From sequence record LC768500.1: a DNA stretch of 64,000 nt. The stretch is one strand, 5' to 3'. The notes under the pieces were generated by a model that searched no databases, had not been told where the DNA came from, and saw only the letters and a program-made list of their open reading frames with translations. The position numbers and the translations under genes are program-made. How positions within the stretch are numbered: the first letter of the stretch is position 1; every line of letters begins with the position of its first letter. Below are positions 42,912 through 44,764 of the stretch, in pieces.

Positions 42912-43190
42912 ATGGCTTCTAAGTCAACCACAAGAATCTACGAACTTGCTGATGGTGGGATTCGGATTGGGTTTGTGAGAAATGAAGGATCGATCAAGGT
43001 TAAGGTAGAACAGTTTGACCGAGAGCGCAAACTCATGAATCTGTATGGCGCAACCATCCATATTTTAGAAAAAGCGGGCGCCATCACTGAACTAAGAAAA
43101 GTATTAGGTAAACAATTTCCGCGTTGGGGATTCGACATGAATCCCGAAGCAAAGGAAGACATCGTGCTTACTTTTATCAAATTGTTCTAG
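42912..43190 (+). CDS. Hypothetical protein
   Basis: 92-aa ORF; hairpin at 43200-43224 follows. Confidence 0.7.
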   Translation: MASKSTTRIYELADGGIRIGFVRNEGSIKVKVEQFDRERKLMNLYGATIHILEKAGAITELRKVLGKQFPRWGFDMNPEAKEDIVLTFIKLF

Positions 43191-43309
43191 TATTTTATGG
43201 TAGGGGTGCTTTGGGCACTCCTACTGGACTCATCATGCATTTTAATTCAACACACAAAAAGAATGAGACCTGTACTATTAAAGTAAGAACAATGATAGGA
43301 GTTGCTTTC

Positions 43310-43993
43310 ATGGATTCAATAAGCTGGTACGGAAAATTTAAAGCAGTAACCGAGGATTTGATTCCGGTTGATCTTTTACGGTACTGCTTATGGTCGATCA
43401 CCTTTAATGACAAAGCGCATGATTTGAATCACGTTTATCATGTTTGTAAACAAGGGAACGATCTTGCATTATTACAAGATTACGATGACCACTGGCGAAG
43501 CCTAGTATTGGCCGGTTGCCTGCTTCACGACATTGGGTGTCGTTACGATCGTAAAACCCATCATCTCATAGCGTATGGGTTGGTCTTCGATTTAACCCAT
43601 CGTTATTGCACCGGACACTATTCGCCAGAAGAGACATTGATCATTGCGAAAAGTTGTCTGGAGCACAGAGCAAGCTGGGAGGGTGATTTCAGTCATCCTA
43701 TTTCAGAGACCGTCGCTCTGGCCGACAGAGGTATTCCTGATTTCGAGTTATACTGCAAACGAGCCGTTCAGTTCAGGTTAGATCAAAACCTGACTGAAGA
43801 TGTTTTGGTAGAAGAAGTTCGCGTTCACATGTTAGACAAGTTCCTACCTAAGACGGGTTACGTCTGGAAAAACTATCCTGAATTAGGATTGTCTTTATAT
43901 GAACAAGAATGGAAAGTGTTCCACGATAAACTTAAAGATGAAGCTGTCTTTAGAGAGGCTGTACTAGAAGCGTACCGTAAATTAAAATCTTAA
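43310..43993 (+). CDS. HD-domain metal-dependent phosphohydrolase
   Basis: AHDLNH...LLHDIG...THH...EHR...LAD gives H..HD..D; AGGAG RBS favours ATG 43310. Confidence 0.88.
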   Translation: MDSISWYGKFKAVTEDLIPVDLLRYCLWSITFNDKAHDLNHVYHVCKQGNDLALLQDYDDHWRSLVLAGCLLHDIGCRYDRKTHHLIAYGLVFDLTHRYCTGHYSPEETLIIAKSCLEHRASWEGDFSHPISETVALADRGIPDFELYCKRAVQFRLDQNLTEDVLVEEVRVHMLDKFLPKTGYVWKNYPELGLSLYEQEWKVFHDKLKDEAVFREAVLEAYRKLKS

Positions 43994-44050: not shown

Positions 44051-44545
44051 ATGATTATTTTACTTGCTGTTTTTGCTATTATCCTTTGTATTGGTTTTTG
44101 TTATAAAAAGATCAATATCAAAAACGACATCGGAATCAAGGTTAACAACGCCACAAAGATGGTCATCAATATTAACCTTGGTAAAATTAAAGGCGAATTC
44201 AAGATCGTTAAACACAGTCGCTGTTTCAAACCCAGAGTCTCTCCTGGTCTAAATGGATTGGTTTATACCGTCCCTGTGTTTTGTACGTTATCTGAATTCA
44301 TCACCGGCTTATATTCTGAAGAAATAAGACCTTACGACAAACAAAAAGATAAACACCTCTTAGACGTCGTCAGAGCCATCGTAGGGGCCGAATTAAAGGA
44401 CGATGGTATGATTGCCTTATTCGACGACACGACCCTTTGTGAGACCGTAGAGAGAGCCAGAGAGTCATTTGTGATGAATAAGGATTATTTCTTCTCTGAG
44501 AAGGGGTGGAACCGAGGCAATGTTATTGCACCTATCAACCTTTAA
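44051..44545 (+). CDS. Hypothetical protein with N-terminal membrane anchor
   Basis: MIILLAVFAIILCIGFCY then KK. Confidence 0.75.
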   Translation: MIILLAVFAIILCIGFCYKKINIKNDIGIKVNNATKMVININLGKIKGEFKIVKHSRCFKPRVSPGLNGLVYTVPVFCTLSEFITGLYSEEIRPYDKQKDKHLLDVVRAIVGAELKDDGMIALFDDTTLCETVERARESFVMNKDYFFSEKGWNRGNVIAPINL

Positions 44546-44559
44546 TTAAGGATTTTAAA

Positions 44560-44700
44560 ATGTCTGACATGTTTGACGTGGATCAACTCAACAACCTGAA
44601 CCTGGAAGCGGTTGAAGAGAAAGTCGAATCTCTTCGTGATGGTGGCGGTGAAGTTGTCGAGGCTTCCGATGAATGTGAAGGCGGCGCCTGCAAAATTTAA
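44560..44700 (+). CDS. 46-aa acidic microprotein ending in an NrdA-like redox tail (DECEGGACKI)
   Basis: AAGGA RBS, biased codons, terminator follows; C-terminus matches E. coli NrdA ...DDGCESGACKI. Confidence 0.8.
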   Translation: MSDMFDVDQLNNLNLEAVEEKVESLRDGGGEVVEASDECEGGACKI

Positions 44701-44709
44701 AACGTGTAA

Positions 44710-44743
44710 TAACTCCTACTCCCCATGCGGGGAGTAGGAGTTA
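44710..44743. terminator. Bidirectional terminator
   Basis: 15-bp perfect stem TAACTCCTACTCCCC-atgc-GGGGAGTAGGAGTTA. Confidence 0.85.
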
Positions 44744-44764
44744 GCAGTACTTATTTTTTTTTTC

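Follow-up and report, generated by a model that had tools for sequence, protein, structure and literature searches.

DNA precursors are made de novo only by ribonucleotide reductase (RNR), whose turnover is limited by the step in which a C-terminal tail re-reduces the active site. In class Ia RNR this tail has two kinds of partner, the cysteine pair in the active site of NrdA and the redoxin (thioredoxin or glutaredoxin) by which the tail is itself re-reduced, and we know of no other partners of an NrdA-type tail. In E. coli NrdA, the redox pair of the tail is Cys754/Cys759. The solved entry 1qfn, reportedly a mixed disulfide of the NrdA tail peptide with E. coli glutaredoxin 1, contains a free synthetic 25-residue tail peptide as its own chain (1qfn_B). 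Two other kinds of protein come close. Sml1/Spd1-type yeast proteins are small, largely disordered and act on the RNR large subunit, and the phage redoxins T4 NrdC thioredoxin and NrdH are viral genes in RNR electron supply.

We analysed a 46-residue peptide of the Klebsiella phage phiKp_32 that has in common with the class Ia NrdA tail an Arg-Asp-Gly (RDG) hinge, an acidic spacer, Cys-x4-Cys and two residues before the end. It differs from NrdA in being without the catalytic body, in having its own N-terminal segment and in being encoded by phages without RNR. The NrdA ATP-cone, N-terminal and barrel domains (PF03477, PF00317 and PF02867), all three of which are carried by genuine NrdA, are absent from the peptide. 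It shares only the C-terminal Cys-pair tail feature and, judged by its sequence, counts as a homologue or mimic of the tail rather than as an NrdA. The 1qfn chain is likewise a free tail, but it is a laboratory construct and not a natural gene product. Sml1 and Spd1 are eukaryotic inhibitors and not tail copies, and they have no sequence relation to the peptide (no Pfam match at E ≤ 0.1). T4 NrdC and NrdH are folded, thioredoxin-type proteins that accompany a phage RNR, whereas the peptide is predicted to consist of helix and coil and is found in phages without RNR. It has neither the thioredoxin/glutaredoxin fold nor Cys-x-x-Cys: there was no Pfam or NCBIfam match, the model is helix plus coil and the Cys spacing is four. 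An earlier note on this DNA, made from the letters alone, knew of no described system of this kind, and we too found no description of a free-standing RNR tail in the literature, Pfam, NCBIfam, PADLOC or PHROGs. Our comparisons show that the peptide is an NrdA-type tail that stands free, is conserved and under selection, and occurs in phages without RNR. The object is thus well supported, and the mechanisms considered below are hypotheses.

A 46-codon gene in a nucleus-forming Klebsiella phage

The window, that is, the whole stretch of 64,000 nucleotides of LC768500.1 that was analysed, belongs to phiKp_32, a nucleus-forming Klebsiella phage of the genus Miamivirus with a genome of 251 kb. The last part of the window is 100% identical to phiKp_32 and ~98% identical to phage Miami, a 253-kb Miamivirus that has a nuclear shell protein and PhuZ tubulin and is thus a nucleus-forming jumbo phage. 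The record OR529409.1, 'Stenotrophomonas phage BUCTxx100', showed 97.9% identity to Klebsiella Miamivirus phages over the 3 kb compared, and its host label looks inconsistent with these relatives.

The microprotein gene lies on the plus strand at 44560-44700 (46 codons and a stop), is the homologue of Miami gp244 and belongs with phrog_10239. Its translation agrees letter for letter with that given in the earlier note, is 46 aa long and ends in Cys39-x4-Cys44-Lys-Ile-stop, with the codons of Cys39 and Cys44 at 44674-44676 and 44689-44691 on the plus strand. A ribosome-binding site, AAGGA (44548-44552, plus strand), was read directly 7 nt before the ATG and 14 nt past the stop of an upstream 164-aa gene. 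Downstream, a 15-bp GC-rich hairpin (44710-44743) and a run of ten T (44754-44763) together span 44710-44763 and separate the gene from the convergent tail-tube and sheath genes. The hairpin folded at -29.9 kcal/mol (z = -6.9), and 0 of 200 shuffles folded as well; a simple terminator scan had missed it, the T-run beginning ~10 nt past the stem. The Miami annotation of the gp244 region gives the same RBS, CDS and terminator. The earlier statement that the tail is its own gene with RBS and terminator is therefore confirmed by these signals. Together with the purifying selection described below, the RBS and the strong terminator hairpin show that 44560-44700 is a real gene.

Three parts of the peptide were distinguished, all encoded on the plus strand. 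Family alignments delimit a variable, strongly acidic N-terminal segment (residues 1-25, 44560-44634). Comparison of the NrdA C-termini of E. coli and three phages with the family places an Arg-Asp-Gly-Gly-Gly hinge at residues 26-30 (44635-44649), and profile, tail and shuffle comparisons identify residues 31-46 (44650-44697) as an NrdA-type redox tail ending in Lys-Ile. The AlphaFold model of the 46-aa peptide contains a helix at residues 15-28 and coil, at low confidence (pLDDT 59). Of the helix and GGG hinge that had been proposed to precede the tail, the hinge is present in most, though not all, relatives, and the helix is only a low-confidence prediction.

The 164-aa gene upstream (44051-44545, plus strand), assigned by PHROG match only to phrog_35362 (unknown function), is probably co-transcribed with the microprotein gene. 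The product of this gene has a hydrophobic segment at its start that resembles a membrane anchor. The second gene upstream of the microprotein gene (43124-43993, plus strand) encodes an HD-domain phosphohydrolase-like protein (weak match, phrog_3921); the ORF as listed starts at TTG, and Miami annotates a shorter product of 228 aa. The microprotein gene of phiKp_32 closes a block beginning at the S80 prohead protease, and its neighbours encode the HD-domain protein, the unknown-function protein, and tail tube and sheath; it thus lies next to structural genes and not to genes of nucleotide metabolism. In Alexandra and the Snuvirus phages the gene sits between dCMP deaminase and thymidylate synthase, and one copy fused to a larger protein lies two genes from thymidine kinase. 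Comparison of the contexts across phages revealed no neighbour or partner conserved beside the gene. The 164/165-aa upstream genes of phiKp_32 and pEa_SNUABM_7 have an identical hexamer in common; a conserved upstream partner was rejected, as beyond this hexamer there is no wider similarity and these genes are unrelated to the small gene's partners in other phages. No maturase gene, such as one for a radical SAM enzyme, was seen beside the microprotein gene in the Miami annotation or in the other contexts read.

Likeness to the NrdA tail

Residues 26-46 match the C-terminal tail of class Ia NrdA over its full length, the match starting at the RDG hinge and finishing with Cys-x4-Cys-Lys-Ile-stop (~21 residues). 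The NrdA bodies of E. coli and three phages all end in Asn-Thr-Arg-Asp-Gly, and when the C-termini are set side by side Arg-Asp-Gly is the motif that closes the folded NrdA body and opens its tail. The conserved module of the peptide begins at this Arg-Asp-Gly and keeps in step with the phage NrdA tails along the acidic spacer and up to the last residue. A search with the family profile against 177,635 PDB sequences returned E. coli R1 for all ten best matches, the profile end being aligned to R1 residue 761, the last residue of the chain. The individual E-values were ~1 because only ~11 residues align. A phmmer search of the PDB with the single peptide did not find NrdA, whereas the family profile did. 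Compared with composition-preserving shuffles, the likeness to NrdA reached z = 25-31 and was equalled by 0 of 200 shuffles. The last eight residues of NrdA in 120 Enterobacterales clusters take two main forms (103 and 14 clusters). Those of the peptide are identical to the second form, that of Pectobacterium/Brenneria NrdA, and match E. coli and Klebsiella NrdA at 7 of 8 positions. The first reading of the C-x4-C-K-I end as like that of E. coli NrdA is thus borne out.

The spacer has 10 residues in the peptide compared to 16 in enterobacterial NrdA, with a sequence that also differs, and it is more strongly conserved among the free peptides than among NrdA tails. A search of all phage records with the 22-residue module yielded 110 records and 110 places, one in each. 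Two settings accounted for these places: a small gene standing free in a jumbo phage, and the extreme end of a gene annotated as nrdA in a phage of 105-178 kb, the latter in phages that include Colwellia 9A, Pseudoalteromonas PH357, J2-1, and Slopekvirus and related Klebsiella phages; Haloarcula virus records were the only outliers among the matches listed. A free module and an NrdA tail occurred together in 0 of the 110 phage records. T4-like Klebsiella phages with the same hosts carry NrdA tails of related form. Since the module is most like phage-encoded NrdA tails, it probably descends from the 3' end of some nrdA gene, of which it would be an old derivative. Recent capture from the host was rejected: the gene has no nucleotide match to E. 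coli nrdA, and its spacer is unlike enterobacterial tails.

Mimicry of the NrdB tail by the N-terminal segment was also considered. Window residues 4-15 (44569-44604) resembled the E. coli NrdB C-terminus (L017) to a nominally unusual degree, with 49 of 2000 shuffles as good. For the family z was 0.9 and 32 of 200 shuffles were as good, and the likeness was rejected as compositional.

Conservation, fused forms and the absence of ribonucleotide reductase

The peptide matches phrog_10239, a PHROGs family of unknown function, with E = 2e-4 (residues 4-46 against profile positions 6-47 of 47), and has no match in Pfam (E ≤ 0.1), NCBIfam or PADLOC (E ≤ 0.1). Using tblastn, the whole peptide was found in 86 phage records, in 77 of them at a coverage of at least 80%. 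Free-standing copies are present in at least 77 phage records, and the genomes of every copy listed measure 212-307 kb. The hosts of the carrier phages are Klebsiella, Erwinia, Serratia, Dickeya, Salmonella and Yersinia. When 1.84 billion representative proteins were searched exhaustively with the profile, only 32 relatives emerged. In the genomes of 185,579 bacterial and archaeal species, a likeness to the whole peptide was seen at three loci only, and all three lie on metagenome-bin contigs: L009, L010 (Raoultibacter MAG) and L011 (Neisseria MAG, 75-kb contig). They are probably phage DNA binned with bacteria, because the same protein cluster, P0005, was seen on a 267.6-kb contig.

Conservation of the Cys pair, which the earlier note had singled out as a check, was strong: all 35 family members have the pair, and in each of them exactly two residues stand between its second Cys and the stop. 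The two cysteines are separated by four residues in 32 members and by three in the other 3. Of the 35 sequences, 34 end in Ile, and 22 have Lys as the penultimate residue. The N-terminal segment is present in all members with a recurring acidic-hydrophobic pattern, and the net charge of the free-standing members is -8 to -12. The Erwinia Snuvirus copy is identical to the window peptide in its last 21 residues and different in its N-terminal half. Over the last 16 codons in seven lineages pS was 0.72, near saturation, and pN was 0.19, with a conserved Ser switching between the TCN and AGC codon families; the gene is under purifying selection across these lineages.

Two members stand apart. P0135, a metagenomic member of 58 aa, has an extra Cys-rich N-terminus, with five Cys in its first 11 residues, before a normal module. 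The most divergent member, phiR1-37 g117 (L007:3959-4114), is without the Gly-Gly-Gly hinge and has its own predicted promoter and terminator. In a published RNA-seq study g117 was among the 26 of 367 phiR1-37 genes dropped for very low expression (PMC4848604), its mean total gene reads of 3.9, 1.5 and 1.2 being below the study cut-off (PMC4848604 Table S2). A check of expression, made for the phiR1-37 copy only, was thus unfavourable: g117 is nearly untranscribed, which is real evidence against expression in this phage.

In some phages the whole module, helix and tail, forms the C-terminus of a protein of 160-300 aa. The N-terminal domains to which it is fused are of two unrelated kinds, type A (three representatives, P0127, P0130 and P0134) and type B (four representatives, P0131, P0132, P0140 and P0142). 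The type B representatives include that of Salmonella phage SA002 (L006:3638-4129), and the type B member P0131 matches phrog_10239 with E = 7e-9. The fused domains are cysteine-poor, with no conserved Cys in type A or type B and none at all in type B. The type B model is confident for residues 1-106, followed by a disordered linker, the module's helix and a disordered tail. It has no analogue among solved structures and resembles uncharacterised ~100-aa proteins of other jumbo phages, in which the domain occurs unfused. Neither domain has a match in Pfam, PHROG, NCBIfam, PADLOC or PDB sequences. Deriving a function from the fusion partners was a dead end, there being no family, sequence or solved-structure match for the type A or type B domains.

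RNR was searched for in the carriers by tblastn with E. coli NrdA and NrdB and by profile HMMs built from four NrdA/NrdB pairs. Neither protein was found in Miami and the window taken together, nor in the Alexandra genome, which was searched in full; the best scores in these sequences were below 9 bits compared to more than 700 bits for the controls. The best 'NrdA' match in Miami and the window, and in Alexandra, was the microprotein gene itself. The 240 of 272.6 kb of pEa_SNUABM_54 that were scanned (88%) also contained no NrdA or NrdB. The Miami annotation (300 genes) lists DHFR, thymidylate synthase, thymidine kinase, thymidylate kinase and a MazG-like pyrophosphatase. Thioredoxin, glutaredoxin and RNR of every class are absent from this complete annotation; on it alone, and for Miami alone, rests the exclusion of class II and class III RNR. 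The earlier remark that no nrdA is adjacent can thus be put more strongly than it was made: by tblastn and profiles, no nrdA or nrdB lies anywhere in the Miami/phiKp_32 genome. Of 17 loci on uncultivated viral contigs, 16 are free-standing copies, none of them with nrdA or nrdB within 10 kb, and the seventeenth is a true nrdA with its own tail. On a 33-kb IMG/VR contig (L050:6354-10063), a viral nrdA is split into two NrdA-matching frames ~1 kb apart; nrdB follows and the normal redox tail is kept. An intervening element such as an intron or a homing-endonuclease gene is the likely reason for this split.

Possible roles of a free tail in the host electron relay

Because an NrdA-type tail is known to partner only with the NrdA Cys pair and with thioredoxin/glutaredoxin, we infer that the peptide most likely enters the electron relay of host NrdAB, between NrdA and thioredoxin/glutaredoxin. 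Our best explanation, which we put not far below an even chance, is that it may act as a soluble extra dithiol shuttle serving host RNR. Host thioredoxin 1 or glutaredoxin 1 would reduce the peptide, and the reduced peptide would in turn reduce the NrdA active-site disulfide, in parallel to NrdA's own tethered tail. Deoxynucleotide output would thereby rise for a 250-kb genome, of whose precursors the phage itself supplies the dTMP branch only (DHFR, ThyA, Tk, Tmk).

Several observations count for such a shuttle. Both cysteines and the end-locked geometry are invariant, and a redox-cycling arm would need what has been kept, namely the cysteines, their distance from the end and the terminal Ile (35, 35 and 34 of 35 members). 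The carriers rely on the RNR of the host while bringing other enzymes of dNTP synthesis of their own, and dCMP deaminase, thymidylate synthase or thymidine kinase lies near the gene in several lineages. The pattern of one module per phage record, a free one never accompanying an NrdA tail, points the same way, as does the free tail peptide that forms an independent chain in 1qfn. The shuttle is also favoured because two parallel reductant routes raise RNR activity: when the active site was reduced directly by a second reductant during recycling of the native tail, activity was up to 3-fold higher (PMC4078304). In the chimallivirus phiKZ, knock-down of the RNR gene lowers plaque formation (PMC12571901). 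Four points weigh against a shuttle. A peptide in free form has to compete with the tethered tail, whose local concentration is very high; a simple shuttle does not account for the conserved N-terminal segment or for the fusion of the module to two unrelated cysteine-poor domains; phiR1-37 g117 is nearly silent; and the phiKp_32 gene lies beside structural genes rather than nucleotide-metabolism genes.

The main and serious rival to the shuttle, in our estimate doubtful, is a competitive decoy or inhibitor. The free tail would fill the tail docking site of NrdA or tie up glutaredoxin 1/thioredoxin 1, and would slow the re-reduction of the RNR of the host or of a co-infecting phage, or divert host redoxins. 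The identity with the NrdA tail speaks for such a decoy as it does for the shuttle, and the spacer, which is more strongly conserved when the tail is free than when it is part of NrdA, fits a peptide that needs a high affinity of its own. Possible targets exist in the T4-like Klebsiella phages of the same hosts, with their related NrdA tails. There is also a precedent in yeast Sml1, which reportedly (Zhang et al. 2007, as cited in PMC4078304) inhibits R1 in competition with its C-terminal tail. However, carriers without their own RNR would be inhibiting an enzyme on which they depend, the gene neighbours in several lineages promote dNTP synthesis, and invariance of both cysteines is more than a pure blocker would require. 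Because both are invariant, the sequence evidence leans slightly towards a redox-cycling role over blocking.

An adaptor is improbable, although it would best explain the N-terminal segment and the fusions. The tail would recruit host thioredoxin or glutaredoxin, and the N-terminal segment or fused domain would bind a phage protein or another host protein, so that reducing power or the redoxin is brought to a new client. The segment occurs in all members with its acidic-hydrophobic pattern, the whole module is fused to two unrelated phage-specific domains, and the type B domain, which folds confidently in the model, occurs unfused in other jumbo phages. In contrast, an adaptor finds no conserved partner beside the gene, no conserved cysteines in the fused domains (none at all in type B) and no fold or family match pointing to a redox client.

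It is quite improbable that the Cys pair is unrelated to RNR, serving in metal binding or in a modified-peptide precursor, or that the gene is merely what is left, in decay, of an nrdA end once captured. The nearly silent phiR1-37 copy, the Cys-rich N-terminus of P0135 and a similarity that spans only ~21 residues would fit such readings, but purifying selection with saturated synonymous sites in seven lineages, an end-locked NrdA tail identity far beyond composition and the lack of a maturase-type neighbour in any context read argue against them. Least of all do we credit the suggestion made earlier of a detached tail serving a tail-less or split phage-encoded RNR, for which split nrdA in viral contigs (L050, in two pieces) and the RNR reported for the genus Agrican357virus (PMC6690015) could be cited, but which in its class I form is refuted for the window's phage by the absence of NrdA and NrdB from Miami/phiKp_32 and is opposed by the same absence in Alexandra and the scanned part of pEa_SNUABM_54, by the 16 free-standing copies with neither gene within 10 kb and by the tail that the split nrdA of L050 itself keeps.

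In wider terms, it is possible, and we put it forward tentatively and clearly below an even chance, that the virus carries the detachable redox arm alone, without the body of the enzyme, and employs this arm in trans so as to accelerate or throttle host RNR. The finding touches RNR tail chemistry, small-protein modulators of RNR and phage auxiliary genes. If this reading is true, the gene would be the first of a new auxiliary class, in which the tail of an enzyme, encoded on its own, works as a diffusible electron shuttle. Viruses would then have a new means of adjusting a host enzyme, whereby one of its moving parts is either supplied or competed with, and enzymologists would gain a natural trans-acting tail for studying tail docking. 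Such a role would also give a function to a 'hypothetical' protein family in about a hundred jumbo-phage genomes.
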